Positions 574 to 33,066 of a DNA stretch of 34,077 nt are shown one piece after another; within the stretch, counting starts at the first letter, position 1, and each line of letters starts with the position of its first letter. A model generated the notes under the pieces. It was not told the origin of the DNA and did no database searches. It worked only from the letters and a program-made list of their open reading frames with translations. This DNA is from Octopus bimaculoides (Eukaryota), in the NCBI RefSeq assembly GCF_001194135.2, contig NC_068991.1:18511229-18545305 (forward strand), read 5' to 3'. The translations under genes and the position numbers were made by a program.

Positions 574-622
574 ATGAAAGTAGCCGTATTAGGATGTGGA
601 ATTTTAGGAGTGAAAATTGCAG
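574..622 (+). CDS. Coding exon 1 ([17 protein letters not shown])
   Basis: ACC-ATG-A start, Rossmann beta-A GCGILG, donor GCAG|gtattt; phase 1 joins exon 2 to complete Gly17. Confidence 0.9.
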
Positions 623-2905
623 GTATTTCATTCAATTGTCCTACTTGTTTATATTTTAGTTGATATTATTGCTTTGCTTCGGACATTACGCGAAAGCAGG
701 CCTATGATGAAATGTGTTCCATATCCGTTTTTATTTTTTCCTCCGAGCTATTTATGTATATTTAAGACTACATTATTCAATGTGACCCAGTTATTGTTGT
801 TTATTGTCACTGTAGTTGTTGGTGCTGTTGCTGCAATTGTTGTTCATGTAATAAATTATACTGACACAAAACCAAGTTATCTATCTATCTATCTATCTAT
901 CTATCTTACTAGCTGTCTGTCTGTCTATCTCTCTATCAACTACCTGTTAGTCTAACTGTCTATCAATCTATCAGTCTGTCTGTCTATCTATTAGTCTATC
1001 TATTAGTCTGTCTAACTGCCTGTCTATCAGTCTGTCTAACTGTCTGTCTGTCTGTCTGTCCGCCCGTTCATCGTTCTGTGGAAGGGAAATGGGATTCTGT
1101 GGCGTTTATGTCTTTAACAAATCATCAGTGGTGTAAATTACACTGAAATGAGCTGAAGATTGCTGCTTCAACCTAGAATTGAAACTGCATCGTGATCTTT
1201 GCTTAACGACATTAAAAGTAAAAGAAAAAGAAAACAAAAAAGTAACAAAAATGAACAAGAATATTTAAAAAAAACACTTTTTACATGTTTTGGTTATTGT
1301 TGCTGTTATTGTTGATGGCGATGTTCATGTGGATTATGTCATTGTTGAGAATGTTGATATAGAAATTATAGTTAAGATGATGATGGTAGTAGTGGCGGAG
1401 GTAAAGAATACGCACACTGCCCGTTTTCGGCGTAACCCTAACCCTAAGCCATAACCCATAACCCTAACTCTAAGCCCTAACCCTAAGCCCTAACCCTAAA
1501 CCCTAACCCCAACCCTAAACACCTGGTGTGCGTTTTCTTTACCTTCGCCTGTAGTAGTGGTGATGATGATGGTGGTGGTAGTGATGATGGTGGTAGTAGT
1601 GATGACGATGGTGGTGGTAGGGATGAGGATGATGATGATGATAGTGGTGGAGGTGATGATGATGAGGGTAGTGGTGGTGATGATGATGATGGAGGGGATG
1701 ATGATGATGACAGTAATGGTGATGCTTAGTAAATTCTATTCAATCCATGCAAGTATGGAAAAGAGGACATTAAGTAATACCTTGCTGTACTCAAGAAGAT
1801 CCCCTACTTCACAGCAGAAGTGTTAAGGTCGCTCCTTCTGCAAGAGTCCTATGCTGGTGCCATGAAAAAGCACTTGTGCTGGTGCCACCTAAAAGCACCC
1901 AGTACACTCTGTAAAGTAGTTAGTGTCAAGAAGAGCGTCCAGCCATAGACACCGTGCCAAATCAGACTGAAGCCTGGTACAGCTCTCCTGCTTGCCAGCT
2001 CTGGTGAAACCGTCCAACCCATGCCAGCATGGAAAACAAACGTTAAATGATGATGATGCTGATGATGGGAGTGGTGATGGCTGTGGCATCCTGATGATGG
2101 TAGGAGGGCCCTTATTTCTTTATTGCCCACAAGGGGCTAAACATAGAGGGTACAAACAAGGACAGACAAAGGGATTAAGTCAATTACATCGATCCCCAGT
2201 GCGTAACTGTTACTTATTTAATTGACCCCGAAAGGATGAAAGGCAAAGTCGACCTCGGCAGAATTTGAACTCAGAATGTAGCCGCAGACGAAATACCGCT
2301 AAGTATTTCGTCAGGTGTGCTAACGATTCTGCCATTTCGCCGCCTTAATGGTAGGAGGTAAGAGGTAGGTGGGCCCTTGTGATGAGCCTACTGGCCATGA
2401 TGATGATGCCTATAGTGGTGGAGATAAAGTAATAATGAGAGTAATTAATGGATCATTGGGATGATGATAATGATAATGATGGTGGCGAAGAAGACATTGA
2501 TGATTATCATGATGATGGTGATGACTCCAGGGCGGGCGGAGAATGATGACTGTAGTGACGGTAGTATTGATGACGATGATGATGACGATGATGATGACGA
2601 TGATGTCCCTAGTAAAGGTCGTAATGATGATAATGGTGATGTTGGTAATGACTCTTGTGATGATGATGATGATGATGATGTTGGTGACACAGTTTCTGAA
2701 GTGTTGCTGTTTGTTGTTTACGCTGTGTCTTCCTGTGATATTGGTGTCATTGTTGGTGATGGAGATATTGGTAGAGATGGTGGCGGCGGCGGCGGTGGTG
2801 GTGGTGGCTGGTAGCTGAGGCTGTAGTTATGTTGGTGTTGCTATTCTGTTGCTATGTGATACAGTAGTGTGAGGAGGGATGGACGTGAGCAAACAGAGAA
2901 TCTTG

Positions 2906-2975
<70 letters not shown>

Positions 2976-3563
2976 TTCTCTGTCTTAGCCTCACTTCGAC
3001 CTTGACTCTCTTTTCATCTCTTTCCCTTACGCTCCCACTTTCCATCTTGTACACACTTACAGAAAGACTGATTATGTTACCTGGATACACTCATCGGTTC
3101 CTCACACCTGTATGTATGTATGCATGCATCTGCGTTTTTGTGTATGTGTGTGTGGGTGTGTGTGTGTGCATGTGCCTGCATCGTTGGATGGATATATATA
3201 NNNNNNNNNNNNNNNNNNNNNNNNNNNNNNNNNNNNNNNNNNNNNNNNNNNNNNNNNNNNNNNNNNNNNNNNNNNNNNNNNNNNNNNNNNNNNNNNNNNN
3301 NNNNNNNNNNNNNNNNNNNNNNNNNNNNNNNNNNNNNNNNNNNNNNNNNNNNNNNNNNNNNNNNNNNNNNNNNNNNNNNNNNNNNNNNNNNNNNNNNNNN
3401 NNTTCTATCTATATATATATAATATTAGGGATAAAAATTCAAAATTACAGGTAAAAACTCAATTAAAATCAATTTTTAGAAATTAAAATGAAATCAATTT
3501 TTATATGTGTGACAGTGGATTTTCACCGATGAGTTCATGAACCTTGGTTCTTTTCCCTAAAAC

Positions 3564-3597
<34 letters not shown>

Positions 3598-3821
3598 GGG
3601 GGGGTATGTGTGTATATATGTACATACATATATATATACTCACACATAAAAGCATACACACACACACACACACAAACTCACACATGCACACATATACATA
3701 TACACAAAAACACAGATGCCATTACATGGATGCACCCACAAACACACATACACATAGAGACAGATATTTCATTGCTCAGATCCACATATACATGCACAAA
3801 CAGATCCATCTTTTTCACAAA

Positions 3822-3917
<96 letters not shown>

Positions 3918-6900
3918 TGTTTTCCTTTGTCTTACACACTCATATCTGGATCTAGAAACATTCTACTTTGGATGGTAGACTTCATCTTTTATCTGGTTTC
4001 ACACCCTCACCCGGGCTTTGGATGTCTTCAGTGACATCAATTTTGTTACATTTTGTTGCAAACATACAGACCAGATCACTGGAATAAGGGTAACTTCCTC
4101 CCTCCTTCCTCTCCCTCCTTCTTCTCCCTCCTTCCTCTCCCCCTTCCCCATTTACAGAGTCCCCTGTAAGAACTGAGGGTCATAGGTAATATATATATGG
4201 TATATTATGTATGGCAAGTGTGTTCTTTTCTTCTTAGAGTAGACTTGTTATTGAGGGCATTCCAACTGTGACCATCTTGTCTTTGTGAGTGGATTTGGTA
4301 GACGGAAACTGAAAGAAGCCCGTCATATATATGTATATGTTTGTCCCCCCAACATCGCTTGACAACCGATGCTGGTGTGTTTATGTCCCCGTAACTTAGT
4401 GGTTCGGCAAAAAGAGACCGATAGAATAAGTACTAGGCTTGCAAAGAATAAGTCCTGGGGGTCGATTTTCTCGACTAAAGGCGGTGCTCCAGCATGGCTG
4501 CAATCAAATAACTAAAACAAGTAAAAGTAAAAGAAAAGAGAGAGATATAATGTCCCTAGTACTCAATGCACTTCATTTACTAAGACAGTAAGTTGTGATT
4601 TTGTGTGTTAGGGTTAGGGTTAGGGCTAGTGGCTGCTAATTCTGGCAGGCTAAGCTATGTACATATTCATATGCACGTATGCCTGTGTGTGTGTGTGTGT
4701 GTGTGTGCGTGTGCGTGTGTGTGTGTGCATGCATATGTAGTATGTGTGTATATGCCATTGCTTTTCTTAAGAGTCTGTATCGCCTGGCAAATATGGGTCA
4801 ACAGATTAATTAAGGGCCAGGTACTAAGACCTAGTTTACCCTCTCTTTGTTCTTACCTTTCTCCTTTACCAGATCAAGGATTAGTTCCTTCTCCCACCCA
4901 CTGCACACACATACACAACTCAAATGTTTTATTTTGCCACACCATGTCCCTTTCTACCCCAACCCACCCCATCCCTCTGTTGTCTGATACATGAAGGAAC
5001 AGATTATATTGTTTTATATTTTTATAGTATATATTTTTAATGGTGAACAACACACACACACATATGAGGTGAGCTGGCAGAATCCTTAGTGTGCCAGAAA
5101 AATTGCTTGGCAGTATTTCTTCCAAGCTTACATTTTGAGTGCCACTGGGGTCAACTTAGTGTTTCATCCCTTTGGGGGTCGATAAAATAAGCACCAGTTG
5201 AACACCGGGGTCAATGTAATCGACTTATCCCCTCTCCCCCAAAATTATTGGCCTTTTGCCAAAATTTAAAACCAATATATATATATCAAATGGATGTCTT
5301 ATAAAACTATTCCACACATACAATAACAGCCATACCAACAATCCAACACACCTCCATCATCAGCTGCCACACGAATATCACTATGGTTTCGACACCTGGG
5401 CAGTACCATTCAACCTGGTGGTGTCAACAACACTAAAAGAAGTGTTTTTTGGGAACAAACATACCTTAGATATCACCACATTCATTTAATCTTAATTCTA
5501 GGAAGATTTAAACCCTAACATTATTAATTAAACTACAACAAAGAAACCACATTTATTCTATGTACAAAAACAGTATCAGTAAATTAATAATTCTATAAGT
5601 AATCCTATAACTAACTCCTAAATTATCTAACTTAATATGTATATTTAAAAGAAGGGGGCAGTCAGAATTTTGGATAATTCTCTATCAGCGCTTTTGTTCA
5701 TTTAACCAAGATAATATCACAGAAAGTTTCTTCGTCTTTTATATGAATCAAAGAAAGATTTAGTTTTTTGGAGAATGGGAGAAAGAGAGGAAGATAGGGA
5801 ACAGAACAAGTGAGAAAGAGGAACTTTCTTCAAACAACAAAATTTCTGTTCAGTTCATATAAAAGAAGAAACTTTTCTGTTTTATTATCTTGGTTTTATC
5901 TTGAAGAGTTCAGTTAAATGAATGAAAGTGCTAATAAAGAATTATCCAAAAATTCTGACTGCCTCCTTTTTCTTAATATACAATATCTGTACATCACTTC
6001 AAACAATCTATACATATATATACATATATATATATATATATGTATATATGCTAGAAATAAGAGCTAGAGTGCTCTGATGCTGCAGTCAATGTACATAATT
6101 GTATACATACATACTGACAGTGACTGTAAATGGTAAAACTGGCAGTCATGATATCCCTGTACTGCCGATGGTAGAGTTGGTTACAGCTTGCCAGATTCCA
6201 GACAAGATCGCCACCAGTATATATATATCTACTCCATAGAAATCTATGGATGATTTAGCGAATCACTAACGTGAATACAAATAATTAAATTAGGCAGTGG
6301 TTTAGCAATGTATCTTAATGACAATTATAGTTTTCCTTGTTGGTGATACATTGCTAAGCCACCGCCTAATTTAATAGGACACATAGAGAGAAGTAGATTT
6401 GGCAATCTGAAAGTTGAGTTTTTCCTTGTAGTAAATTATATTTTTTGATTAATATTTATTGAAAACCTTTTCTTTGAGATGTAGATTTTGAAAATCATGT
6501 CAGTTTTTCTCAAGAACACACCACTTTTGAGCCTTTTAGTGATATGTTGGCACTCTGTCACTTACGACGACGAGGGTTCCAGTTGATCCGATCAACGGAA
6601 CAGCCTGCTCATGAAATTAATGTGCAAGTGGCTGAGCACTCAACAGACACGTGTACCCTTAACGTAGTTCTCGGGGATATTCAGCGTGACAAGGCTGGCC
6701 CTTTGAATTACAGGCACAACAAAAACGGGAAGTAAGAGTGAGAGAAAGTTGTGGCGAAAGAGTAGAGCAGGGTTTGCCACCATCCCCTACCGGAGCCTCA
6801 TGGATCTTTAGGTGTTTTCGCTCAATAAACACTCACAACGCCCGGTCTGGGAATCGAAACCGTGATCCTATGACCGCGAGTCCGCTGCCCAAACCACTGG

Positions 6901-7421
6901 GCCATTGCGCCTCCACCTTTTAGTGATATACACACATGTATACACACATACACACACACTCTCTCTCTCCCTCTCTCTCTCTCTCCCTCTTTCTCTCTCC
7001 CTCTGTCACACACATATACACACACAGTTGTTTGGCGCTAAATATCTGCCACATCAGTGTGTCAATGTCAACAGTTTATGAAGACCTTTCAAGGTCATGA
7101 ACACGGCTCTCTTCTGCAGCAAGAAACTTGTTCATTTACAAAAAAGGTTGGTCTTTAACAAATGCATACTTGATTTAATATTCTTTCGTACTTTTTTTCT
7201 TCTTCCAGCCAGTGGGCTGTATGTAGCAAGGCTTAGCGCTCTACCCTTCAAGCTTTCAATAGTTGCTAGCTGTTTACTATCCTAATCATTAATTATGCCT
7301 TCAATAATTATTCAACTACATTATTAATTATGTTTACCAGTATTAGAAAAAAAAAAAAAAACATCTACTCCCACATCATTGGTGAATGGTGGTGGTTGTG
7401 GTAGCAGTAGTAGTAGTAGTG

Positions 7422-7452
<31 letters not shown>

Positions 7453-7825: not shown

Positions 7826-7865
<40 letters not shown>

Positions 7866-8307: not shown

Positions 8308-11300
8308 CGTGAGTGATCTAAGAGTCCATAAATAAAGGGAGAAGATGCACTCATATATCTGTCAATAGAGTGGGTATATTAGTCTGGTCAGTAGAGTGGG
8401 TATATAGGTCTGGTACTTAATACATTGTACCTGTATTAAGTTAGTGTATGGAGCATATACTGGTTTCAGATTTTAGCACAAGGCCAGCAAGTTGTGGGGG
8501 AGGGGTAAGTCAGTTATATCACCACCCCCAGTACTCAACTGGTACTTGTGTTATTGACTGCGAAATGATGAAAGGCAAAGTCGATCTTGGTGGAATTTGA
8601 ATTTAGAATGTAAAGACAAGACAAAATTTCGCTAAGCATTTTGTCCTGCTTTTTAATGATTCTGCCAGCTCACCACCTTGTACAAAACATATATCAAAAA
8701 ATAGTTTCTTCTGTAAATTTATAGTAGATGGTTTTGAATTATAGAATCAGACAGAGATGGTCTTGGACGGGTTGGCATAGAAAGGGTTAAACCTAACAAA
8801 TACCAACGGAAATTATTTATATGATATAAAACATGAAAATCAAGTATTATCATGTATTTACTATCACCCCTAATCTATCAATATTTTAAAACAGGTGTTA
8901 TAAAGTGAGGAGAAAAATCTTTAATCTGTAAAGTTGTTTATTCATCACAACTGCAAATAACTGGTCAACGAAAGGTCAACACATTAAAAAAAAAAACATC
9001 TGTCAGCTTCTTTTGTTAACAAAATTAATTTTTAACTGCCCACATCCACCACCCTTAGAAAAAAAATGAAACAATAATCAATTCAAACAAAGACATAAGA
9101 TGGGTGAGTCCTAGGTATGTATGTATGTATGTCATTATTCAGTTTCATTTCAAGATTTCTTGCCAATAGAGAAAGAGCTGGTTTCTAACCTAGACCCAAG
9201 GTTCCTTCATTGGAATTTCAACATCAACAACAGGGTATTTTTGTTTGTGTGTATGTATGTATGTATGTATGTATGTCATTGTTCAGTTTTATTTCAAGAT
9301 TTCTTGCCAATAGAGAAAGAGCTGGTTTCTAACCTAGACCCAAGGTTCCTTCATTGGAATTTCAACATCAACAACAGGGTATTTTTGNNNNNNNNNNNNN
9401 NNNNNNNNNNNNNNNNNNNNNNNNNNNNNNNNNNNNNNNNNNNNNNNNNNNNNNNNNNGGTATGTATGTATGTATGTCATTATTCAGTTTCATTTCAAGA
9501 TTTCTTGCCAATAGAGAAAGAGCTGGTTTCTAACCTAGACCCAAGGTTCCTTCATTGGAATTTCAACATCAACAACAGGGTATTTTTGTTTGTGTGTATG
9601 TATGTATGTATGTATGTCATTGTTCAGTTTTATTTCAAGATTTCTTGCCAATAGAGAAAGAGCCGGTTTCTAACCTAGATCCAAGGCTCCTTCATTGGAA
9701 TTCCAACATCAACTACGGTATTTTTGTATGTATGTATGTATGTCTATGTGCAGATTTGTTTGTTTTGTTTTATATATGCCTTCTCATGCATATACTTGCA
9801 TATCTAGACATGCTCATGTATAATTAAATGATAAACTTCTGGAGAGTTTTACAGATTTTTACAGTTCCAGTAATGGATTGGATCTGTAGTCTTCGGATCA
9901 GCTTTCTCCTTTCTGGCTTTGAGAAGCTTAATTTTTCAAGATTGATATTTAGGCAGTGTGTTACATATCCCAGGACCCCACGAAAAAATTGTCTGAGATG
10001 AAAAAAAGGTTAGGAACTGTTGATCTAAAAGATCATAAGCACTTCCCTTCCCTGTTGACTTAACAAACAAAAGAAAAAAATTATATCATCCAAAATATCC
10101 TTCCATTTTATGAAGACGATAGGGTGTGATTTGAGGATAAATTGGGTGTGATTTCTTGTCAATTCTTTCTTAACTTCTCATTTCCTTTTTTTTTTTCACA
10201 TGCATTTCTTTTTTATAGGATGGTTATTTTGCCAATCTGAGCCCTAGTGTTGCAGTAATTATTTTTACAACTAAGATAAACTATATACTTACTAATTATT
10301 CAACTATGAAATAGTGGATGTTCGGTCCAGCTTGAATTAAGAATAAATTAATTATACAGTTGGACAGTTATGTAGGTGAAAGATTTATTTATGATACATC
10401 TAATGATTAGAACATTAAATAAACTAATGAATATCAAATGCCAAATTGGATTGGTGGGGGTGGGTTGCCTAATATGGTCATAGTGCAGTGACAGGAATAA
10501 ATAAATTTATATTTATATTTGTTGAAAACTTGTTTTTGATTTGATTTATGAGTTAGAGAGAGAAGAACCATGTCTATAACTTTTGTGGGCCATCCTAGAT
10601 TGGTGAGGTTGATGTGTTTTCTTAATTACTCAACCCTTTAGCATTTAATCTGGCCATATCTAGCCCAGATATTCTACCTGTCTTATGTTCAAACTGGCCA
10701 TATCTGGCCTCTCACACCTACCTTATAATATAATTCTATAAATAAAGACATTCGAGCGAGATCGTTGCCAGTGCCGATGGACTGGCTCCTGTGCAGGTGG
10801 CACGTAAAATACACCATTTCAAGCGTGGCCGTTGCCAGTAAGACATTCGAGCAAGATTGTTACCAGTGCCGATGGACTGGCTCCTATGCAGGTGGCACAT
10901 AAAATACACCATTTCGAGCGTGGCCGTTGCCAGTACCGCCTGACTGGCCTTCGTGCCGGTGGCACGTAAAAGCACCCACTGCATTCTCAGAGTGGTTGGT
11001 GTTAGGCAGGGCATCCAGCTGTAGAAATTCTGCCAGATCAGATTGGAGCCTGGTGTCGCCTCCTGGTCCACCAGTCCTCAGTCAAATCGTCCAACCCATG
11101 CTAGCATGGAAAGCGGACATTAAACGACAATGGTGATGATGATGATGAAACAATCACATCATTAAAATCCCAAAATTAGAGATAATGCCTCATAGTCAGT
11201 GAGGCACACAAGCGATGACACTACCACAAGGACTGGACCTGTGGTGGCTAATTTAGGTTGCATGTAAATGAGGTTTTCATGTGTGCATAAGCATATGTGT

Positions 11301-14297
11301 GTGTGTGCATATGTATATATGTCTGTGTGAACATATGTGTGTGTGCATATGCATGTATGTGCATGCGAGCATATGTGTGAATAAGCACGTGTGTTTGTGT
11401 ATGTGTGCATTTATGTGTGTATTTGTGTGTGAGCATGTGTGTGTGTGTGCATATGTGTGCTTACTTTAACCTTATAGTCAGGAGGGAAGACAGTTCCCAT
11501 AACATTTTTCAGGGCCTTCCAGACTGGTGGGATGGAGGAAGAAGGGTATTCTGAAATAGAGGCCTGGCTTGAATGCTTGCAACAGAGTGGCCTTCTGCTA
11601 AAAATACTCAAGATCTAAAGTGGGGAACGTTAAACCATAGGACAGATAATGTCTACTACCGTGAAGGCTATGGTAGGGTTTAAACTCAGGATACAAAAGT
11701 CTAGAACAAATGCTGCAAGTTTTTCCATTCCAATATTCTCACAGTTCTGCCAATCCGTTAACGTGGGTTGGTACTTGTTTATCAATCGCAAAAAAGATGA
11801 AAGAGAAAGTTGACTTTGGTGAGATTTGAACTTAGAGCTTGGGGGAATCAGAATAAATACTGCAAGGTGTTCTGTCCGGTGCTCTAACAACCCTGTCAAT
11901 TCACAACCATGTGGAGGGTTATGGAGGAGTGAAGGGGTTGGTATAATCTTTATGAGAACACGTGTTCAATATGAATGGGAGCAAATGAACATGTTTTGTA
12001 TTTTTAAAAGAAGAGAATAGAAACTCAAATGATTTTTTGTTTTTCTTTTTTACATGACACACAATTGAAATTCAAGTATAAGCATGCATGGCTAATTACT
12101 ATTAATTTATTAATGTTTCAAGACAAGTGATGGCGCTATTATTAATGGCAAAAGAGAAAGACAATCTTTCATCTGTGAAGTTGTTTATTCATCATAACTC
12201 TAAATAATTGGTCAGTAAAAGGTCAGCGCATTTAGAAATATCAATCTCTGCCATTTTCAAAGCAATAAAATTCTATAATAATAACTTTATTGTTTTCTCA
12301 AGAAAGTTATTTTTAACATACACTTTTTTTTTTTTTTTACTTTTTTGTTTCCCTCTTTTTTGCTCAGTTTTACCACTTCAATCATCACCATCATCATCTT
12401 CATCATTGTCATTGGCATCATCATCACCATCATTTAACGTCTGTTTTCCATGCTGGTAGTGGTTAGGGCAGCGGACTCGCGGTCATAGGATCGAAGTTTC
12501 GATTCCCAGACCAGGCGTTGTGAGTGTTTATTGAGCAAAAACACCTAAAACTCCACGAGGCTCCGGCAGGGGATGGTGGCGAACCCTGCTGTACTCTTTC
12601 ACCACAACTTTCTCTCACTCTTACTTCCTGTTTCTGTTGTGCCTATAATTCAAAGGGTCAGCCTTGTCACACTTGTGTCACGCTGAATATCCCCGAGAAC
12701 TACGTTAAGGGTACATGTGTCTGTTGAGTGCTCAGCCACTTGCACATTAATTTCATGAGCAGGCTGTTCCGTTGATCGGATCAATTGGAACCCTCAATGT
12801 CGTAAGCGACGGAGTGCCAACAACATGCTGGTATGGATAGGATGGGTTGACAAGAGCTGGCCAGCTGAAGAGCCAGCTGAAGAGCCACCCAGGCTCCCTG
12901 TCTGTTTTGGCATGGTTTCTATGGCTGGGTGCCCTTCCTAACACCAACTACTTTACAGAGTGTACTGGGTGCTTTTATACAGCACCCTCATAGGTGCTTT
13001 TATGTGGCACTGGCACAAGTGCTTTTTACATGGCACCAACCATGAGTTATCAGATGTGCAGATTAGTTATGGTTCAGTTCAGTCCATTATCACTGAAGAT
13101 TTGGGTATGAGATGCATGTCTGCCAAGTTTGTGCCAAAACTGCTTTCAGCCGACCAAAAAGACCCTCGGGTTTCAATTGCACAAGATCTCCTTGGTTGTG
13201 TTGAGAACTATGAAATCTTTTTTAAAACTTTGCGTAGGCTTTTAGAGCTGGTATTGCCAAGCTTTTGACAAAATTTGATGCTGATTCTCTGCTCAGCTTT
13301 CTCTGTCATGGTCAATGCTATGATCACACGCTACACACGTTCCTTCCAAACACTGCTGGAAACAACAGAAGTGAGCTAGAGCATTAAAACTTAGTGTGCA
13401 TGCACAGCAGAGTTTAAGGTTAATTTGTGCCAAGTGGCTTCACTCTGCATGTTTTAGCTTCGTTACTATGGCAACAGTCCGGATACTTATTGATCAGACC
13501 ACACACACACACATACCCAAACACACACACCACCACCACCACACATCCACATCACACATACGCACACACATCCACATCCACTAACACATTCTTTGTGTGT
13601 TAGTGTAAATATATACATTATCGCATAATGACCAAAAAAATTTATCATTTTCTGCTAAGTATCATGCTTGACTAACTAAACAGAATAGATTATCGTATGG
13701 AATCCATCAAATTGATATCTGTCTGTTTATTTATTTACATGACATACCTATCTACATACCTTCCTTCTTTCCTACCTACATACTTAATTATCTACCTATC
13801 TACCTAAACTAATGTATCAGTCATATCAGTATCTATACTGTGTATGTGTATGTGTGTGTGTGTGTATGTGTATTGTCATAGAAATTGAAAGGGGACCTAG
13901 AAAATAACTTTCTACTAAAACTGAACATTCTGAACAACACAAGTAAAACACCCAGCAATACAATGACTCCATTTCTAGACATAAGTTTTCTGTTATGAAA
14001 TACTCCTTGTCTAAATTCACCTCCAGTGGAGGCATTTGGCTCAGTGGTTAGGGCAGCGTTTCTCAACTGAGGTTCCCCGGAATCCTAGGGTTCCGCAAAA
14101 GGTTCCTAGGGGTTCCACGAAAAAGAGTGAGCTAAGCTAATGCTAATTTCATGATCGTAATATTACTATATATACACAACATATTATTGGTTATTGTATT
14201 ATTGTAATCATCCTATCTAACCTATTATGTTATCAAAAAAATATAACAACCATTGGGGATATATTGAGTGATGTCTGTAATATATGGACACTCTATA

Positions 14298-19825: not shown

Positions 19826-22800
19826 GTCTATCTGTCTATCTACCTACCTGTATTTGATCATCTAAAACCATGGAAAAGTAGTGCCCCAGTATGACCACAG
19901 TTCAGTGGCCAAAACCAGTAAAACAAACAACCGCTTCCCCCTACCTCCCGTCCCACTAAAAATATACTTCTAAAATAAAATAATAAAAGCATAAATGAGG
20001 TGGTGGTAAGTTGTGGTTGGCAGTGAGCGGTGTGATGACATGACAGTTACAGTGCTTTTTGGTGCATTAGTCATAGCAGGCGTGTAAGAACGGCAGCCCC
20101 GCCGACCACCGACTGTTGCTACCATACAATGCAAGCTGCAAGAATGAAATACCTTTCCCTTGATATTGGTGTCATTAGCTGGTGTTTTCTTTTTTTGGTT
20201 TTTGTTGTTGTTGTTGCTGTAAGTGACTGTAGGCTGTGAAAGGAATGGGAAAGGGGTGGTTTAAGGTTGGTGGGGGTTTTGTAATGGGGCAGGGGAATAG
20301 GTTGTGGAGCGAAGGTGAGTGTGAGGGTCAGGGAGGGTTTCAGGTGAGTCCCAAATACTCACACTCACTTGCTCAGTCTGTCTTCTTATTACACGACTTT
20401 TTCCTCTGTTCTGGCCTGGGCGCCAGAATAGAGCCCCTGTCGGATTGTGGTGGCTCATCATGGTGCTGGTGGCCATGGTGATGTTGTTGTTGGTGGTGGT
20501 GGTGGTGGCAGCAGTGAAGGTGATTGACCCCTTCTCTACGACAAATCCTCTTCTCTGTTCCCCTTCTCTTCCATGGATATAATAGTCATTTAAAAGAAAA
20601 AAAATCTAGAGTGTCCATGTAGCCATACTGTCTTTGCAGTCATGATGTCTGTGTAGCTATAGTAATTGAGTAACTATAATGTTTGTGTATGTATAGTATT
20701 TGTATGTATAAGTGAGTGTGTGTGTGGTTACACTGGTCTGAAAAACAGTGTGTATTGCTATAGTGTGGAGGCGTAATAGCCCGGTGGTTAGGGCAGCGGA
20801 CTCGCGGTCGTAGGGTCGCGGTTTTGATTCCCAGACCGGGCGTTGTGAGTGTTTATTGAGCGAAAACATCCAAAGTTCCACGAGGCTCCGGCAGGGTTTG
20901 GTGGCGAACCCTGCTGTACTCTTTCACCACAACTTTCTCTCACTCTTTCTTCCTGTTTCTGTTGTACCTGTAATTCAAAGGGCCAGCCTTGTCACACTCT
21001 GTGTTACACTGAATCTCCCCGAGAACTACGTTAAGGCTACATGTGTCTGTGGAGTGCTCAGCCACTTGCACGTTAATTTCACAAGCAGGCTGTTCTGTTG
21101 ATCAGATCAAGTGGAACCCTCGTCGTTGTAACCGATGAAGTGCCAACAACAACGATTGCTATAGTGTTTGTGTAACTATGGTATCTATGAAGCCATAAAG
21201 TCTATGTAGTTATACTGTCTTCGTAGCTATAGTGTCTCTGTAGCTATATTGTCCAACTATATTGGCCAAAACTGGTAGTCTTTTTTCTGGATAAGCATTG
21301 GTAGCAGTGTGGAGGTGCAATGGCCCAGTGGTTAGGGCAGCGGACTCGTGGTCGGAGGATCGCGGTTTCGATTCCCAGACTGGGCATTGTGTGTGTTTAT
21401 TGAGCGAAAACACCTAAAGCTCCATGAGGCTCCGGCAGGGGGTGGTGGTGGTGACCCCTGTTGTACTCTTTTGCCCCAACTTTCTCTCACTCTTTCTTCC
21501 TGTTTTTTGAGTAAAGCTGCGATGGACTGGCGTCCCGTCCAGCTGGGGGGGGGGGACACATACACCACAGAAACCAGGAAACCAGGGCCCATGAGCCTGG
21601 CAAAGCTTTAAAAGGGCACATAAATAAAAAAACAAAATTGGTAGCAGTAGCATAGCTAATAGAGGAGACAGGGAAGCGACTACCAGCACTGAGCAGATCT
21701 TTCAAAATAGGCACCTATTCAACAATTTTTTTTTAGTTCTTTAGTTCACTTGTGTGATAAAATTCGAATCTCTTTTTCCCTTTTGTTAATTGCATGGCCT
21801 TGGGAGAATGTTCTGGATTCATTACTTTATTTGACTAACCTCCCATGTTTTTGAACTGTCGGTTCAATCTCCTGTGATGTATTGTTGGCCACGGACATCT
21901 GAAGAACCAAAACAAACCCTGACGTCATGACCTCTTAACACTGGGAAATACTGTGGAGTTTTATCTTTTTCATGTCACACATTGGTAGTTGTAAATTTCA
22001 TACGAAATCACATTGTTACTGAAACATGACGTTTATGAATATAGAATGCAATTCATCATCATCATAGTTTACCGTCCGCCTTCCATGCTGGGTGCTTTTT
22101 ACATACCACCAGCACAAGGGCCAGTAAAGTGGTACTGGCATTGGTCACATCACATAGGTACATAATTTTAAATGGTGCTTTTTACATGCTTTTTACATGC
22201 CACCAATATGGGAACCAGTCAGGCAGAACTGGCAGTGACCATGCTCGAATGGTGCTTTTTATGTGCTACCAGCACAGGAGCCAGTCAGACACTACTGGCA
22301 ATGACCACACTTGAATGGTGCTTTTTACATGTCACCAATATGGGAGCCAGTCAGGCGGAACTGGCAATGACCATGCTCAGATGGTGGTTTTTATGTGCCA
22401 CCGGCACGGGAGCCAGTCAGGCACTACTAGCAACGACCACACTTGAATGGTGCTTTTTACATGTCACCAATATGGGAGCCAGTCAGGCGGAACTGACAAT
22501 GACCATGCTCAGATGGTGGTTTTTATGTGCCACCGGCATGGGAGCCAGTCAGGCACTACTAGCAATGACCACACTTGAATGGTGCTTTTTACGTGCCACC
22601 AGCCCAGGGGCCAGTCAAGTGGTACTGGCATCGGCCACATCACATAGGTACATAATTTTAAAATGAAAAGACAAGATAATCTTGACTGGGCTTTCTTTGA
22701 TTCATTAGTTTGCTTAGTTAGGACTGACCTAGGGTTAAACAATTAAACAACAATAACCACTATAGCAATAGCACTTACTCAGTTCATTTCTCATATATTG

Positions 22801-25391
22801 CTTTTTGATATTTGATTTTCAGTCAGAGGTTATAGGTATGTTCTCTCTGTCAATGTAGATTTTTTAAAGAAAAACAAGTCTAACTTGTTTACTCCTCGTC
22901 ATCATCGTCATCATCATCATCATCATCATCAATATCCTCATCATCATCATTGGCATCAGTGTTGATCATCATCATCATCACTACAACCACTTCCACCACC
23001 ATCATCATTGTCATCATCATCCTCATCATCATCCTCATCATCATCCTCATCATCATCATCGCTGCCACCACCATCACCACTGCTACTGCCACTGCCATCA
23101 CCACCACCATCATCATTGTCATTGTCGTGATCATCATCATTACCATTGCCACCACCACCATTGCCCTCATCGCCACCGCTGCCACCACCACCACCACTAC
23201 AACCACCTTCATCATCATCATCATCAATGTCATTATCATCATCGATGTTTCCACCATTGTTATACATCTGTTATTCCATTCTAGCATGGGCCGGGGCAGT
23301 TTTTCTTGGTAGTGCTGTTGTAAAGCCAGAGGCCCTTCCAGTCACCGACCCTTCTAATTGCCTCTTACAACATCCAGACTTGTAGTGTAGCATCTGTCTT
23401 CTTTCAGGTGCTCTGGCATACCATGGTCACAGAGTTAAGATGTATGACAACAATACGGAAACACTCAATAAAGCCTACTCCGTCATTGAAGAAGATAAAA
23501 ACATGCTTCGACAAGAAGGACTGCTGCTACAAAAGAATTTCCTGGTAATTAATACTGTTAATTGTTCATTAATGGGTTTGGCTTTTACCTTCTTTACAAA
23601 AAGGTTGTTTTTGTTTCTTTCTGTCTTTTTGTTTAATAAGTTAATTCAGAGAAGAATGGCCAGATTGTGGCCATGGCCTTTGCGAGTCCTCTCAGACAGG
23701 ACAGACTGACAATATAACTGCGCAAAAAAATATCAGAGGGACTTACATCATCTTCATCATTGTTTTATGTCTGCTTTTCATGTTAGTATCGGTTGGATTG
23801 ATTGATACAGTCTGAAATAATTCTTTTCTGGAGTTATATCCATTGTAAGTGTGTTTGGTGAACCAGTTGCACTTATATGTCTTATTTCAGTTTGGCATTT
23901 AACAGCTTGATGTCCTTCCTAATACCAACCACTTTACAGAGCTTTATAGGGTGTACTGAATGCATTTTATTGTGGCACCAGCACTAGAGAGGGTGTCATG
24001 TTTTCCACAAGACCAGACCAGCTGGTCATCTCGTTCATACTGAAAGAAGCTCACCATACATGTGTATGTGTGTGTGTGTATCTTTGTCTAAATATTATTT
24101 GGTGATTGTAAATGAGCATCATTATACAAGCAATGTTGACTGTATTGGTGAGCTGGCAGAAACGTTAGCATGCTGGGCAAAATGCTTAGCGGTATTTCAG
24201 CTGCCGTTACATTCTGAGTTCAAATTCCACTGGGGTCGACTTTGCCTTTCATCCTTTTGGGGTTGATAAATTAAGTACCAGTTGTGGTACTTGTGCCTAG
24301 AGTAAAAAAGAATGTTGATTGCATCCAGTCTTCAGGGAAAACCATGCGCTGTCCTAGAGAAATATTACTTTGTTTAGAAATTGGTGAAGGGTGGTGACAA
24401 GAAGGGCATCCAGCTGTAGAAAATCTACTTCAGCAATTTCCATAAAGCATATGAAGCAAGGGAAAGTGGATGTTAAATGATGATGATGATGATGATGATG
24501 ATAATGATGATGGTAGTGGTGATGGTGGTGGTGAGTAGTAGTAGTAGTAGTAGTAGTAAAATATAGACATCAATACTTGGAAGTTTAGTATCTAAATTCT
24601 TAATCTTTATAGTTTTGGCAACAGGGAGTGCTAAATCCAAATTCTATTACAGACGTAGCAAATCTTAGAAAAGTTTAAAGTGTGCATTAATCTAAAAGTT
24701 CTGCTGACTCTTCATATCAAAGTGATGATGATTTATTCTTTCAGGGAACAATATATTATCTTAGTGGCCTCCAAGAAACAGTCAAAGATGCAGATTTTAT
24801 ATTTGAAGCTATTGTTGATGATCTTGAGATGAAACAAAACTTATTCCAAAGTAAGTACTAGACCAGTCAACCCCTGGCCTAGGTTAGCCATTGATTTTGA
24901 TTTAAAAAATAACTTCTGAAACTTAAGGGGTGGGTGTAAAAGAGAGTAAAAGAGTAAATAGTATAGTGGACTGGCAGAATCATTAATCTATTGGACAAAA
25001 TGCTTAGCAGTGATTTTTCTTCTTTTTTATGTTTTTGGCTCAAATCCTACCAAGATGAACTTTTCCTTTCATCCTTTTGGGGTCATTGAAATAAGTACCA
25101 GTTGAGCAATAGCATCAGGGATATTAATTATTCTCTCCCATGAAAAACTGCTGGCTTTGTGCCAAAATTTGAAGCTGTTTAAAATGGCAAATTGGCTGAG
25201 TTGTTAGCATACCTGTCAAAATGTTTTGTGGTTTTTCTTCCACCTTTACATACTGAGTTCAAATTTCATTGGGGTCAACTTTATCTTTCATCCTTTCAGG
25301 GGTGATAAAATAAGTGTCAGCTGAACACTGGGGTCGATTTAACCAACTTAGCCCCTCTCCTGAAATTGCTGGACTTGTGCCAAAATTTGAA

Positions 25392-25427: not shown

Positions 25428-27104
25428 GAAGACATCGCGCAGTATCCAATATTGCGAGGTTGTTGATTGAAGATATTGTGTCAACCGGGGGTTTGTATTG
25501 TCTGTTAAGTCACAACAAGGATCTCAGACAGATGCAATATGCATGCAATTCCAAGTAAAGCTGATTTTTGAAATACACCAAGATTGTTGAGTATTTCTAA
25601 AGTTTCCAGATGTTTCTTCAGGTTGGGTAGTATTGAACCCAATGCTCTGATGACAACAGGGTCAACCTTTATGTTTGACTCTTGTGGCTGCCACATCTTA
25701 ACAATCTAAATTTTCAGGTCTCCATATTTATCAACCTTTTCCGCTTTCTTTTCCCTCCCCCTCTCTTTCTCTCTCTCTCTCTCTTCCCTCTTTCTCTTTA
25801 TTATTATTGTTGTTGTTGTTTTAATTTTTACTCCATATATTTCTTATAACTTAGGTGCTTCACAAATGTGCAAGAATGATGCAGTGATTGCAACAAATTC
25901 ACTCAAGTTTCATATCTCAGATATTGCCAAGAAATCTTCAAACAAAGAGGTAAGATGGCTGCAGTATATCCAAAATACCTGAGATAAATTACTACTAGAC
26001 TTCATCAAAGATTCTTGCAGACATCTTTAGATATGATTAATAGTCTTATTCACCTTCCAATAACTTGAAGGTATGCCCCAACACATTTTCCCACCATCTT
26101 CTCTCCTTCTCATCTTTCTCTCTCTGCTTTTCTCATTTCTCTCTCCTGTCTTGTCTCTTTTCCAACAGGGAGGAGCCTTTACCACCAGGTACCTGTTTCT
26201 GTCACTCTGTCATAGCTTAATGTGCCATCATGTGGCACAAAACCACCTGTTTCCAAACTGTTCCCCACTCAGTTGAGGGATCTTGTCTTGTGAATTACTT
26301 AATGACCTTGCTGGTGCCGGTGCCTTGTAAAAAGCACCCGGCACACTCTGTAAAATGGTTAACACTGGGAAGGGCATCTAACCAAAGAAGCCATGCCAAA
26401 GCAAACAGTGGAGCTTGGCACAATCCTCTGACTTACCAGTTCCTGTCAAACCATCCAACCCATGCCAACATAAGAAATGGATATTAAATGGTGGTGGTGG
26501 TGGTAGTGGTGGTGGTAGGGGTGGTGGTGGTGATGATGATCACTAAATGAACTTCCCCATACAAGTGGTGTCATTCATGTCCAATCTTCTGTGAAATGAT
26601 GTTTGACACAAGGCCAAAAATTTGACGGGTGGAGACAAGTTGACTGCATTGACTCCTGTAATTGACTGGTACTATATTTTATTGACCTTGAAAAAAATGA
26701 AAGGTGAAGTTGACCTCAGCAGGATTTGAACTCTTATAACACAGAGAGCCAAGGAAAATGCTACTAAGTATTTTCTCTGATGTGCTAATGATTCTGCCAG
26801 TTCACTGCCTTCTTTCAAATTTTGGCACAAGGCCAGCAATTTTAGGGGATAGGGGTTAGTCAATTACATTGTAATCAACTAATTGACTGGTATTTTGGTT
26901 TGCTGACCTCAAAAGAGTGAGCGGAAAAGATGACCCCAACAGAAACTGAAATGTGATGACAAAGGGCTGTTACAAATACCATGAGGTATTTTGTTCTGGC
27001 TCCTTAAGTTCAAATCCTGTTGGGGTCAACTTTGCCCTTCATCCCTCCTGAGTTGATAAAATAAAGCACTAGTCAAGAACTAACTCTGACCTTGTGCCTA
27101 ATGG

Positions 27105-27138
<34 letters not shown>

Positions 27139-29820
27139 GGTGATGGTGGTGGGGGATGGCAGTAACAATGCTCATAAGGAAAATAACAACATCAACAACA
27201 ATAATGACTTCTTTTATTTGCCTCAGGAGCATTGGGTGAAGGGAATATTACATATCTATTTATCTATCTACTTATATATCTGTGAATGTATGTGTGCGTT
27301 AATACTCAATATTTCATATATTCAATAAGACATTCAATACTTCATTTCATTTTACTATTTATATTATATTATATATTCCATATTCTATATCCCACATTAA
27401 TTTTACAAGAATATAAATAAAACATAAAAAGCAGACAGAGCTGGAACTCTTTTAAATAATATATTCCTCTATACACGATCATACAAAACCCTTTTCTTTA
27501 TATATTTTTAAATTTTAATTTTAATTTTAATTTTTATTCACACATATATATACATACACATATATNNNNNNNNNNNNNNNNNNNNNNNNNNNNNNNNNNN
27601 NNNNNNNNNNNNNNNNNNNNNNNNNNNNNNNNNNNNNNNNNNNNNNNNNNNNNNNNNNNNNNNNNNNNNNNNNNNNNNNNNNNNNNNNNNNNNNNNNNNN
27701 NNNNNNNNNNNNNNNNNNNNNNNNNNNNNNNNNNNNNNNNNNNNNNNNNNNNNNNNNNNNNNNNNNNNNNNNNNNNNNNNNNNNNNNNNNNNNNNNNNNN
27801 NNNNNNNNNNNNNNNNNNNNNNNNNNNNNNNNNNNNNNATTTCATCAATTAAAAATAATTAAAATCAGAATCTTATATACGTATAAATGAAGATAATCAT
27901 TTAATCTGATTTAAAATTAAACTCATCCAAAAGAACAACTTATATACATAACTGATGTTAGTTGGAAGACATACATTGCAATGGAATGTTGACCAGATTA
28001 ATATGTTCAGTAAATATCAACTTTTTGTTTATGTTTTCACATGTTTCTATTACTTTCTTTCACAGCAAATGATTGGTTTAAGGTTTCTATACCCTGTCTA
28101 TTATATACCTGAAGTTGAGATCACTCTGAGCCAGCAGACTTCACCTGAAACTATTGAAAAAGGTAAGGCCACAACAAGTTTCAGTCACGTTTCTAACATA
28201 GTTCTTTCTATTTTCAATAGCAGTCAATTGTTTGCTTCAAGAATGGACAAGGTATTTCATTTCTATGCTTGTCACTTAACCTGTTGGTGACGTGTTGACA
28301 ATGTAGCAATAAACACTTATTTGAAAAATAGAAAAAAAAAATTATAATCTGTGTGAATTTGTGACTATATATGTGTGGATAAAACCATATTCCCTCGTCA
28401 GTCATCATCATCATCATCATTATGACCTCCTCCCCTTCCNNNNNNNNNNNNNNNNNNNNNNNNNNNNNNNNNNNNNNNNNNNNNNNNNNNNNNNNNNNNN
28501 NNNNNNNNNNNNNNNNNNNNNNNNNNNNNNNNNNNNNNNNNNNNNNNNNNNNNNNNNNNNNNNNNNNNNNNNNNNNNNNNNNNNNNNNNNNNNNNNNNNN
28601 NNNNNNNNNNNNNNNNNNNNNNNNNNNNNNNNNNNNNNNNNNNNNNNNNNNNNNNNNNNNNNNNNNNNNNNNNNNNNNNNNNNNNNNNNNNNNNNNNNNN
28701 NNNNNNNNNNNNNNNNNNNNNNNNNNNNNNNNNNNNNNNNNNNNNNNNNNNNNNNNNNNNNNNNNNNNNNNNNNNCTTACCCCCTCGTCCACCTTACCCC
28801 CACTCCACCTCATCTCTGCTTCCACTCTCGCCTCTCTCCCTCCTGCTTTTCCTCTTCATCCCTCTTCTCTCCCTCCTCCTTATCATTTCACAAATTTACT
28901 TTCCATGTTGGCATGGGTTGGATGGGCCATCAAGTGCAAGTCAGTTCTTGTTTGGAAATACTTCTTCTTTCTTTGTACCCTTTTAAAGCCTAGCCAGGCT
29001 CATGGGCCTGGTTTCCCAGTTTCTATGGCATATGTGTCTCCCCCCCCTCCCCAGTCCATTACAGCTTTACTCAAGAAACAGGAAGAAAGAGTGAGAGAAA
29101 GTTGGGGTGAAAGAGTACAACAGGGGGTCACTACCACCCCCTGCCAGAGCCTCGTGGAGCTTTAGGTGTTTTCACTCAATGAACACACATAACACCCGGT
29201 CTGGGAATTGAAACCGTGATCCTCCGACCACAAGTCTGCTGCCCTAACCACTGGGCCATTGTGCCGTTTGGAAATACTACCCTCCTATATGTGTCAGTGA
29301 CCACATCTTGCTCATACCTTTTATTTTGGCATGGTTCTATGGCTGCTACAATTGGACGCCCCTCCTATCACTAACAATTTTACTAAGTGAACTAAGATTT
29401 ATTTTATCCTAGTATCAACATTGAAGAGGCTGTCATGTCCCGAAGACAAGGCTGAACTAAAGGGTCTTCTTAACTTTGTGTTGTCTCTACTCATTCACCA
29501 ATTGCTTTACAGAGTGTACTGCATGTGATTTATTGTGGCATCAGCCCTAGTGAGGTTATCAAGTACCAGCAAGATAAAAGGCATGTCCATTGCATGGCAC
29601 ATTGGGGAAGTGTCTTCTACAATAGCCTCGAGCCAACCAAAGTCTTGTGAGTGGATTTGGTAGATGGAAACTGAAAGAAGCTCTTCATATGTATACAGGG
29701 TGTCCACAAAGTCTGGGTACATGGAGTAAATAAAATCATAACATAAACAATTAAATATGAAAAATAATAATTTCTTAAAGTATATGTTAATCCCCGTATA
29801 CCCAGACTTTGTGGACACCC

Positions 29821-29857
<37 letters not shown>

Positions 29858-32172
29858 ATGTTTATGTGTCTGTGTTTGTCACCCCACCATTGCTTGACAA
29901 CCAATGCTGGTGTGTTTATGCCCCCGTAACTTAGCTGTTCAGCAAAACAGACGGATAGAATAAGTACCAGGCTCACAAAGAATAAGTCCTGGGGTTGATT
30001 TGTTCGACTAAAGGCGGTGCTCCAGCATGGCCACAGTAAAATGACTGAAACAAATAAAAGAATAAAAGAATATAAGGCATGTGGCTCAGTGGTTAAGCTG
30101 CTGTACTCATGATTGTTAGCTCATGGGTTTGACCAGGTGGTGCATTCTGTTCTTGAGCAAGACACTTCATTTCACACTGCTCCAGCCTCCCTTGCAATCT
30201 GTGGGGAATGTTGGCCTACTTGCCTAGCCTGCAGAGTGGCATCATTCGAAGGCTAAAATGATACAAAGCGCATTGTGAACAGGGATGTGTAACAGCATCT
30301 TATAGTCAGGTTGGTCACATGGTCGTGTGATATACATGTATATGTGTACGCGTTTGTGGCCATCTACCTTTTGTCTTGACATCATGTGATGGTTGTAAAC
30401 AAAACATCACTGTCATGCAGATGAGGTTCATTCATAATTTTCAATGTAACCGTTTTGGTCATCTGGAGTTGATAAAATAAGCAACAGTCAAGTATTGGGA
30501 TCAATAGTATCGATTAGGCACCTCCTCTCAAAGCACCTGGCTGTAGTGGCTGTAGGAAAATATTACCTTACTTGGAAACAGTTGAGGGTTGGTAACTGGA
30601 AGGGCATCTGGTTGTAGAATATCTGCTTGAACAAACTCTGCCTGTCCCATGTAAGCATAGAAAATTGAGCATTAAATCAATGATGATGATAATGATGACA
30701 CACACTCACACACAATATGTGTATATATGTATATATATATATAAACAAAAGTAAATGAGTATATGCATATATACGTACAGGTATGTGCATACCGACATCC
30801 ACCTGTATGTATAGGTGCATATCTGGGTACAGGACATTGCAAACAAACGTAGACGAGAACACACGAGCCACATTANNNNNNNNNNNNNNNNNNNNNNNNN
30901 NNNNNNNNNNNNNNNNNNNNNNNNNNNNNNNNNNNNNNNNNNNNNNNNNNNNNNNNNNNNNNNNNNNNNNNNNNNNNNNNNNNNNNNNNNNNNNNNNNNN
31001 NNNNNNNNNNNNNNNNNNNNNNNNNNNNNNNNNNNNNNNNNNNNNNNNNNNNNNNNNNNNNNNNNNNNNNNNNNNNNNNNNNNNNNNNNNNNNNNNNNNN
31101 NNNNNNNNNNNNNNNNNNNNNNNNNNNNNNNNNNNNNNNNNNNNNNNNNNNNNNNNNNNNNNNNNNNNNNNNNNNNNNNNNNNNNNNNNNNNNNNNNNNN
31201 NNNNNNNNNNNNNNNNNNNNNNNNNNNNNNNNNNNNNNNNNNNNNNNNNNNNNNNNNNNNNNNNNNNNNNNNNNNNNNNNNNNNNNNNNNNNNNNNNNNN
31301 NNNNNNNNNNNNNNNNNNNNNNNNNNNNNNNNNNNNNNNNNNNNNNNNNNNNNNNNNNNNNNNNNNNNNNNNNNNNNNNNNNNNNNNNNNNNNNNNNNNN
31401 NNNNNNNNNNNNNNNNNNNNNNNNNNNNNNNNNNNNNNNNNNNNNNNNNNNNNNNNNNNNNNNNNNNNNNNNNNNNNNNNNNNNNNNNNNNNNNNNNNNN
31501 NNNNNNNNNNNNNNNNNNNNNNNNNNNNNNNNNNNNNNNNNNNNNNNNNNNNNNNNNNNNNNNNNNNNNNNNNNNNNNNNNNNNNNNNNNNNNNNNNNNN
31601 NNNNNNNNNNNNNNNNNNNNNNNNNNNNNNNNNNNNNNNNNNNNNNNNNNNNNNNNNNNNNNNNNNNNNNNNNNNNNNNNNNNNNNNNNNNNNNNNNNNN
31701 NNNNNNNNNNNNNNNNNNNNNNNNNNNNNNNNNNNNNNNNNNNNNNNNNNNNNNNNNNNNNNNNNNNNNNNNNNNNNNNNNNNNGTGTATATATGTATAT
31801 ATATATATAAACAAAAGTAAATGAGTATATGCATATATACGTACAGGTATGTGCATACCGACATCCACCTGTATGTATAGGTGCATATCTGGGTACAGGA
31901 CATTGCAAACAAACGTAGACGAGAACACACGAGCCACATTATACACACACACACACACTCATATTTTTCTATTGCCATGATAGATCGCTGACCACTACAT
32001 TTATTTTTTTTCTTCTCCTTGTTTCTCTCCTTATTTCTTTCTATGTTCCTTTCAGTTGAAGAGTGTAGGCTTGAAACGTCAAAGACTTTCTCTATTCCCT
32101 AGCGTTATACTAATACATCCATTTGTTGTTTACACTACCTGTGTTTGTCTGTTGTTTTTTTTGTAAATTCTC

Positions 32173-32213
<41 letters not shown>

Positions 32214-32244
32214 AATACACCCATATATATACATATATATGCAC

Positions 32245-32285
<41 letters not shown>

Positions 32286-33066
32286 CACATATACACTCAT
32301 ATATGCATACATACACACACATATATATATATATATACATATATAAAACGTATATAATGCTTATAACAAGTTATGTTTTCTTTGTATTTGACAGGAAGAA
32401 AGTTCTTGGAGAAAATGGGGAAGACATTATTCTTCAGATCTGGCACTGAACCATTGATTCTTAAGGAAGAGGAAAAAGATATGAGAAAACAACGTAATTT
32501 ATTATTTCAACATTCAAAACTATTGGCTGATTGCCTGATGTGTTAATGTTTTAGATGTAATGCCTTTTATGGCATTTAGATTTACATATTTCTTACATTT
32601 GAGTTCATTAAGTTCAAAATCAACTGGTTCTGTGATTGTGTTTCCTCAACTTGGGTGGCAGGGTGATTAAATATGTACTGATAGACTACTAAGGTCAAAG
32701 AAGTCTTAAAATGCTGAACCTTATGAAGTACATGACAAGACCGAGGTATGTGGTGCATTGCTGTACTTGAAAAGACATGCCTACCACAATAGAATTGAAA
32801 TCCTAAAACCAGGGTACCACATAAAACGCATTGGTGTGGGTACAAGTGGTGCCACATGAAAAAGCACCTATTACATTCTGTGGAGTGGTTGGTGTTCAGA
32901 AGGGCATCCAGCTGTAGAGACCAAGCCAAAACAGACTATGGAACCTGGTGTGACCTCTGGCCATACCAGTTCCTGTTAAGCCATCCAAACCATGCCAGCA
33001 TGGAAAATGGATTTTAAATGATGATGATGATGATGATGATGTTAATATGTGGAAAATGGATTTTAA

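Follow-up and report, generated by a model that had tools for sequence, protein, structure and literature searches.

Gene structure and full-length protein

We analysed a 34,077-nucleotide stretch of the Octopus bimaculoides genome (contig NC_068991.1; G000:C11:18511229-18545305 of a 2.34 Gb assembly), referred to here as the window, which carries seven of the eight coding exons of a gene for a 293-residue protein. In this protein an N-terminal dehydrogenase-type Rossmann domain (Pfam 3HCDH_N) is followed by a long helix, a disordered linker of ~30 residues and a C-terminal C3HC4 RING finger. All eight exons lie on the forward strand, have GT-AG borders and consistent phases, and together give a complete open reading frame (ORF) of 882 nt. 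Exon 1 (574-622) runs from Met1 to the first base of the Gly17 codon and contains the G7-x-G9-x-x-G12 dinucleotide loop (codons 592-609); the N-termini of orthologues read MRVAVIGCGILG or MVKIAVLGCGLMG, in agreement with this exon. Exon 2 (23408-23544) encodes residues 17-62, with Asp30 (23446-23448) at the end of β2, and exon 3 (24745-24850) encodes residues 63-98, including the motif E83-A-I-V-D-D-L-E-M-K92. Residues 98-129 are encoded by exon 4 (25855-25949), which contains N112 and, at the position of the catalytic serine, Leu114 (CTC, 25902-25904), and residues 130-162 by exon 5 (28066-28162), with Arg135 (AGG, 28081-28083), Tyr138 (28090-28092) and Glu147 (28117-28119). Exon 6 (32395-32493; residues 162-194) carries a family motif and ends at a phase-1 GT donor without a stop codon. 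The RefSeq octopus protein, used as a probe, located the remaining two exons: exon 7 (33681-33791; residues 195-231), which encodes the end of the long helix and the disordered linker with its P215-x-L217 motif, and exon 8, which encodes the RING and the stop codon TAG and lies 7.1 kb past the window end (window-equivalent 41187-41374; G000:C11:18552415-18552602; L008:7110-7297).

The original prediction had described an intact protein at 574-32493, read from a clean spliced ORF over seven exons. The ORF is indeed clean, but this range holds six coding exons, exon 7 lies beyond it although within the window, and its end point, 32493, is the phase-1 splice donor of exon 6, so that only 194 of the 293 residues were covered and the RING was missed. 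The homologues retrieved with this 194-residue fragment are ~290-300 residues long and nearly all have a RING (PF13920) after 3HCDH_N. The orthologue from Argonauta hians has eight exons of identical lengths within 10 kb and encodes a collinear 293-residue protein. In addition, a cephalopod orthologue is encoded free of introns on ~2-kb contigs from three sequencing runs, which we interpret as spliced mRNA in which the GxGxxG and RING exons are joined.

The window contains eight runs of N, all of them intronic; the one closest to an exon is 228 bp away. They conceal no exon, since every one of the 293 residues is accounted for by the Argonauta orthologue with its eight exons of matching length. 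A further run of 4796 N lies in intron 7 directly after the window end (window-equivalent 34078-38873; L008:1-4796), and here too no coding exon is missing as judged by the orthologue and the RefSeq protein. NCBI isoform X1 (P0001) begins with a different first exon, MFKNSIYKHYYGLLSPKKQLL, which is located 2.2 kb upstream (window-equivalent approximately -2208; L012:7792).

A dehydrogenase-type Rossmann domain without its catalytic residues

Residues 2-172 match Pfam 3HCDH_N with an E-value of 5.6e-41 for the 194-residue spliced fragment, a value that rules out a chance match, and of 1.9e-40 for the full 293-residue protein. The codons of the G7-x-G9-x-x-G12 loop, Asp30 and the E-A-I...K motif were found at the residues given in the original prediction, with identical numbering. 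HMMER alignments to solved HADH-type structures placed GLRF on GLHF and NSLKF on NTSSF, and agree with the earlier manual alignment in which the catalytic His158 of HADH becomes Arg135 (the same AGG codon), Ser137 becomes Leu114, Asn161 becomes Tyr138 and Glu170 is kept as Glu147. The segment bearing Asn208, previously thought to be absent, is present: by manual alignment its position is K185, which is Ser, Thr, Asn or Lys across the family, with Ser or Thr in most relatives, and it is the whole 3HCDH_C domain that is missing instead. The full 293-residue protein gave no Pfam match to 3HCDH_C (PF00725), and no 3HCDH_C exons were found when human HADH was searched against 74 kb comprising the window and 40 kb downstream. 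These data clearly show that the catalytic His, Ser and Asn have been lost together with the entire C-terminal domain, whereas the residues that contact nicotinamide adenine dinucleotide (NAD) in HADH are kept. The latter include E83, D87, K92 and N112, which by our own mapping correspond to E106, E110, K115 and N135 of human HADH, established cofactor contacts in HADH-NAD structures.

None of the enzyme models in NCBIfam recognized the protein. The best score was 98.9 bits against a cut-off of 508, and all 19 dehydrogenase models fell far below their cut-offs (312-999). Nor could a nearest enzyme subfamily be named, as FHMPC dehydrogenase, HADH, Hbd and CRYL1 scored about equally and none was singled out; a YYIP.VE motif is reminiscent of CRYL1. 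With Arg, Leu and Tyr in place of His158, Ser137 and Asn161, and with the C-terminal substrate and dimerization domain absent, L-3-hydroxyacyl-CoA dehydrogenase activity is very unlikely, in line with the original prediction.

Two ways in which the canonical residues might be restored were rejected. A possible alternative exon bearing a histidine (25678-25734; HADH-like match, E=2.7) lies upstream of exon 4 and hence in the wrong order, is directly preceded by a stop codon, continues into low-complexity sequence and is absent from the orthologues. Adenosine-to-inosine (A-to-I) editing is common in cephalopods; it would turn the AGG codon into GGG (Gly) rather than a His codon, and the CTC codon contains no A and would yield no Ser codon.

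RING finger and linker

The C-terminal part of the protein matches Pfam zf-C3HC4_3 (PF13920) at residues 239-286 (E=6.4e-13, above the cut-off), with C3HC4 spacing and all eight zinc ligands. In a 54-sequence family alignment, on which the conservation counts given here and below are based, C242, C245, C257, H259, C263 and C266 are invariant, and C277 and C280 are found in 53 of 53 sequences. The position of I244 is Ile or Val in every sequence (54/54), and P278 and R281 are likewise kept (53/53). In other RINGs this Ile and Pro are E2 contacts, and the Arg after the last Cys is the linchpin. The nearest solved RINGs are those of MDM2, MUL1, MDM4, MEX3C, MGRN1, cIAP and XIAP. As in MDM2/MDMX, MUL1, cIAP/XIAP and MGRN1, the C3HC4 RING stands at the extreme C-terminus, with Ile after the first Cys and a C-P-x-C-R motif. 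The tail, VKVYHS, can be aligned with those of MUL1 and MDM2 and has its aromatic residue three from the end (IPLYNS in MUL1; VLTYF in MDM2), with Tyr or Phe at position 291 in 52 of 53 sequences. From what is known of these related RINGs, the octopus RING is predicted to be an active, probably dimeric, ubiquitin ligase. Within the linker P215 and L217 are invariant, although this segment is disordered in the predicted structure.

Distribution and phylogeny of the family

Fusion of 3HCDH_N to a RING was found in more than 50 species. Named matches of this architecture come from molluscs (cephalopods, gastropods, bivalves and a chiton), from annelids, a brachiopod, nemerteans, echinoderms, corals, an anemone and a jellyfish, and also from rotifers, a mite, a millipede, a barnacle and the prasinophyte green alga Cymbomonas; a spider gene model matches but has no RING. 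No chordate, insect or nematode was among the named matches obtained, an absence from the lists that is no proof of absence. Three variants of the architecture were seen: P0103 (669 residues) has two tandem 3HCDH_N(Arg)-RING units, P0072 (478 residues, from the millipede) has an extra N-terminal part of 185 residues that may be a merged neighbouring gene, and P0094 (583 residues) has a long C-terminal extension after the RING.

R135, F136, L137, P139, V140, E145 and E147 are invariant across the family (54/54), as are F174, R176, G178, P181 and L184. Position 114 is Leu, Met or Ile in all 54 sequences and never Ser. At the nucleotide site, GxGxxG is present in all 47 members having an N-terminus, E83 and K92 in 54/54 and N112 in 43/54. 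Position 30 is Asp in 45 of 52 sequences and Ser in the other seven (P0008, P0010, P0013, P0023, P0027, P0030 and P0031), the named ones of which are bivalves (Ruditapes, Mercenaria, Dreissena, Mya and Mactra). Replacement of the β2 Asp by Ser in Rossmann folds usually relaxes the preference for NAD over NADP, and the ligand may have changed specifically in this bivalve lineage.

When the family profile was searched against 1.84 billion representative proteins, 99 matches reached E<=1e-30; we tabulated the residues of the top 148. Where a RING was present and the site was covered, the His158 position was Arg in 59 sequences, Gln in one, Trp in one and His in none, and the Ser137 position was never Ser; the RING-bearing relatives that cover position 114 have Leu, Met or Ile in 58 of 59 cases and His in the other one. 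Where no RING was detected, the His158 position was His in 48 sequences, Arg in 21, Asn in three and Tyr in two, with Ser at the Ser137 position in 51. Of the 21 sequences with Arg but no detected RING, most are short fragments that end before it. In a maximum-likelihood tree of the N-terminal domain, a branch with a Shimodaira-Hasegawa-like approximate likelihood ratio test (SH-aLRT) value of 98 splits all Arg/RING sequences from the His-bearing enzymes. As these sequences form one clade, the His-to-Arg change, the loss of Ser, the loss of the C-terminal domain and the fusion to a RING are linked and have a single early origin. P0191 (578 residues, GLRFLHP) and P0184 (326 residues, GARFGNP) have no RING and lie in the canonical His clade, yet have Arg at the His position; these may be independent His-to-Arg changes.

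Selection on the gene and other octopus paralogues

Comparison of the octopus and Argonauta genes gave proportions of non-synonymous and synonymous differences (pN and pS) of 0.092 and 0.70 respectively, and a Jukes-Cantor ω of ~0.05, which is approximate as the synonymous sites are saturated. By part, ω was ~0.04 for the dehydrogenase domain and 0.12 for the linker, while for the RING pN was 0.07 and ω was not computable. The gene is therefore under strong purifying selection. The strongest conservation in the family falls at residues 130-147 and 166-184, i.e. in the former active-site region, which is the most conserved part of the protein and does not fit the picture of a decayed active site; it points to a new specific function at this site and not to simple loss or passive decay. 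The comparison suggested with the original prediction has thus come out in its favour as regards conservation, with Arg135 invariant and Ser never present across phyla, and purifying selection strong.

The octopus genome has other 3HCDH_N genes, at G000:C3:113896635-113899891, C19:26171003-26176270 and C2:84287012-84292823. The gene on C3 is HADH-like and has the canonical NTSS and GLHFFNP motifs intact, so that the canonical enzyme function is covered elsewhere in the genome. The gene on C19, which starts VSVLGAGLMGAG, looks like the α subunit of the trifunctional enzyme.

Predicted structure

We examined an AlphaFold2 model of the Argonauta orthologue, which is 85% identical to the octopus protein, built with the family alignment (mean predicted local distance difference test score, pLDDT, 84.8; predicted template modelling score, pTM, 0.67). 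The model consists of an eight-stranded Rossmann domain (residues 1-175) with R135 at the end of the strand formed by residues 131-136, a long helix (186-205), a disordered segment (206-236; pLDDT <50) and a confident RING (239-293). After residue 175 there is thus a single helix, the linker and the RING, and no C-terminal helical domain. Foldseek aligned ~180 residues with the N-terminal domains of HADH, Hbd, MFE1 and CRYL1 at 2-3 Å.

Gaps, repeats and other sequences in the window

The window is 38% GC and rich in microsatellites and interspersed repeats, and the only other ORFs found in it were of low complexity or repeats. The 909-N gap at 30876-31784, in intron 5, is flanked by identical sequence, the 157 bp before it (30719-30875) matching the 157 bp after it (31785-31941), with 133 shared 25-mers at a constant offset of 1066. 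It looks like an unmerged overlap of contig ends, in which case intron 5 is probably ~1 kb shorter than drawn. A translatable tandem unit at 9114-9651, with at least three copies, lies on both sides of the 71-N gap at 9388-9458 (245 shared 25-mers), and its copy number is uncertain. Within intron 1, a 164-codon open frame at 22172-22663 is made up of ~129-bp tandem repeats, of which 22315-22443 and 22447-22575 encode near-identical 43-residue units; it matched no family and is probably a satellite-like repeat and no gene. Just downstream (22868-23341) are long low-complexity frames rich in His, Ser and Ile. Intron 1 also contains interspersed repeat copies at 12535-12645 and 20860-20970, and near 6601, 12728 and 21054, with near-identical translations and one recurring piece on either strand; these are probably remnants of a short interspersed nuclear element or of a transposon.

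Discussion

The octopus protein has lost its catalytic residues, yet purifying selection still maintains both its fold and its gene, and its sequence marks it as a probable pseudoenzyme. The reading that we favour, with somewhat better than even confidence, is that its Rossmann domain is a non-catalytic module binding NAD(H) or another ligand, and that this module controls or targets the RING E3 ligase encoded by the same eight exons. The domain would bind NAD(H) or a related adenine dinucleotide without oxidizing 3-hydroxyacyl-CoA, and the remodelled cleft (R135/E147, Y138, Y141, F174 and R176) would bind the nicotinamide end and/or a second ligand or peptide. Occupancy of the cleft could then gate either the recruitment of substrate or the activation of E2~ubiquitin by a probably dimeric RING, coupling redox or metabolite state to ubiquitination. 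In its most specific form, which we put forward tentatively and hold to be possible rather than probable, the protein would be an ancient eukaryotic metabolite-gated E3, with NAD+/NADH or a second ligand in the Arg135/Glu147 cleft switching the dimeric RING.

Four other explanations were weighed against this reading. It is unlikely that the Rossmann domain binds no nucleotide at all and is only a folded scaffold for protein-protein contacts or substrate recognition by the ligase. Many pseudoenzymes are scaffolds, and a conserved surface at R135, Y141, F174 and R176, together with the linker motif P215-x-L217, could bind a peptide; however, GxGxxG is present in every member and the β2 acidic residue, E83, K92 and N112 are kept from animals to green algae, whereas the nucleotide loops of Rossmann folds usually decay once the cofactor has been lost. 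Distinctly unlikely, too, is that the domain remains an oxidoreductase with altered chemistry or substrate, in which Arg135/Glu147 replaces the His/Glu pair and acts on a small molecule or a modified side chain, the RING being a tethered second activity. Such a protein would be expected to keep its NAD contacts, the invariant Glu147 and a highly conserved cleft, all of which are seen, and substrates other than CoA esters have been taken on by the 3HCDH fold in CRYL1, FHMPC dehydrogenase, diketoreductase and carnitine dehydrogenase (the first three being among the closest solved relatives and the last only among the NCBIfam matches). These active relatives, however, all keep His, Ser and 3HCDH_C, which supplies half of the substrate cleft and the dimer, whereas here His, Ser and Asn have given way to residues poorly suited to a proton relay, the C-terminal domain is absent and no NCBIfam enzyme model comes near its cut-off.

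The remaining two explanations concern the extent of the gene. The original prediction took the protein to be a free-standing binding module of ~194 residues lacking an effector domain, and a complete 3HCDH_N domain is indeed contained in its first 172 residues. This is now very improbable, as the end of that ORF is a splice donor from which exons 7 and 8 continue in phase to the RING and stop codon, and the fusion recurs across more than 50 species and is also encoded on mRNA-like contigs; the C-terminal RING is the effector half of the protein. That a decaying dehydrogenase fragment has been merged with a neighbouring RING gene across gaps, as an artefact of annotation or assembly, is scarcely credible: there are eight N runs in the window, exons 7 and 8 are separated by a further run of 4.8 kb, and one gap or more looks artefactual, but the exons are in phase with one another, the Argonauta gene is built identically within 10 kb, the complete protein is encoded on contigs free of introns, ω is ~0.05 and the architecture is shared family-wide.

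Several points nevertheless weigh against the binding-module reading that we favour. NAD(H) binding, and with it the idea of an NAD(H) sensor, is something we infer from conserved motifs only, and the presence of D30S in one bivalve group weakens the case for strict NAD specificity. The first exon of isoform X1 replaces exon 1, so that this isoform has no GxGxxG loop, and if it were the main octopus transcript the nucleotide site would be destroyed. A few enzymes use arginine as their catalytic acid or base, which makes new chemistry possible, and catalysis would account equally well for the very high conservation of the cleft. As to novelty, no paper on the 3HCDH_N-RING pairing was found in a full-text literature search of limited extent.

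The protein resembles four groups of known systems in part. HADH/SCHAD, Hbd, FadB/MFE1, CRYL1 and FHMPC dehydrogenase (PF02737 plus PF00725) have the same N-terminal Rossmann domain of ~170-180 residues (HMMER E-values of 1e-20 to 1e-25), and share with it GxGxxG, the β2 Asp, the E-A-I...K motif and the equivalents of Asn135 and Glu170. Unlike these enzymes, the octopus protein has a RING instead of 3HCDH_C, falls in a separate clade, lies below every NCBIfam cut-off and has no presequence-like N-terminal extension, Met1 leading straight into β1. Among RING ligases it differs from MDM2, MUL1 and the IAPs in that the partner of the RING is a dehydrogenase-type Rossmann domain and not a BIR, p53-binding or transmembrane domain, and no Rossmann-RING pairing was present among the solved structures searched. 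In RNF146/Iduna (WWE plus RING), binding of iso-ADP-ribose by the non-RING domain switches the ligase on; the likeness is one of working principle only, as WWE and Rossmann domains have unrelated folds and the two proteins show no sequence kinship outside the RING. CtBP, HSCARG/NMRAL1 and NmrA are Rossmann NAD(P)(H) sensors in which dinucleotide binding is used for signalling and not for metabolism. They belong, however, to other Rossmann superfamilies (D-2-hydroxyacid dehydrogenase and short-chain dehydrogenase/reductase-like), their output is transcriptional or by protein binding, and they have no built-in ubiquitin ligase domain. Ligand-switched RING ligases and Rossmann NAD(H) sensors are thus each known, while their combination in one conserved protein appears to be uncharacterized. 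That no vertebrate, insect or nematode is among the named matches would explain why the family has gone unstudied.

Automated annotation was expected to mislabel this gene, and NCBI does name the octopus protein 'probable 3-hydroxybutyryl-CoA dehydrogenase'. Database names elsewhere in the family include '3-hydroxybutyryl-CoA dehydrogenase(-like)', 'lambda-crystallin homolog', 'peroxisomal bifunctional enzyme-like', 'L-carnitine dehydrogenase' and 'RING-type domain-containing protein'. Such mislabels, in dozens of genomes including the octopus RefSeq, inflate reconstructions of the β-oxidation and butyrate pathways in invertebrates. If the function proposed here holds, the family would represent a new wiring between metabolism and ubiquitin, in which the cofactor pocket of a dehydrogenase has become the part of a RING ligase that does the sensing or recognition, and it would bring a Rossmann-fold member to the small set of ligases that are switched by small molecules. 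Nematostella, oysters and sea urchins are among the tractable non-model animals that have the gene, so that this hypothesis is directly testable.

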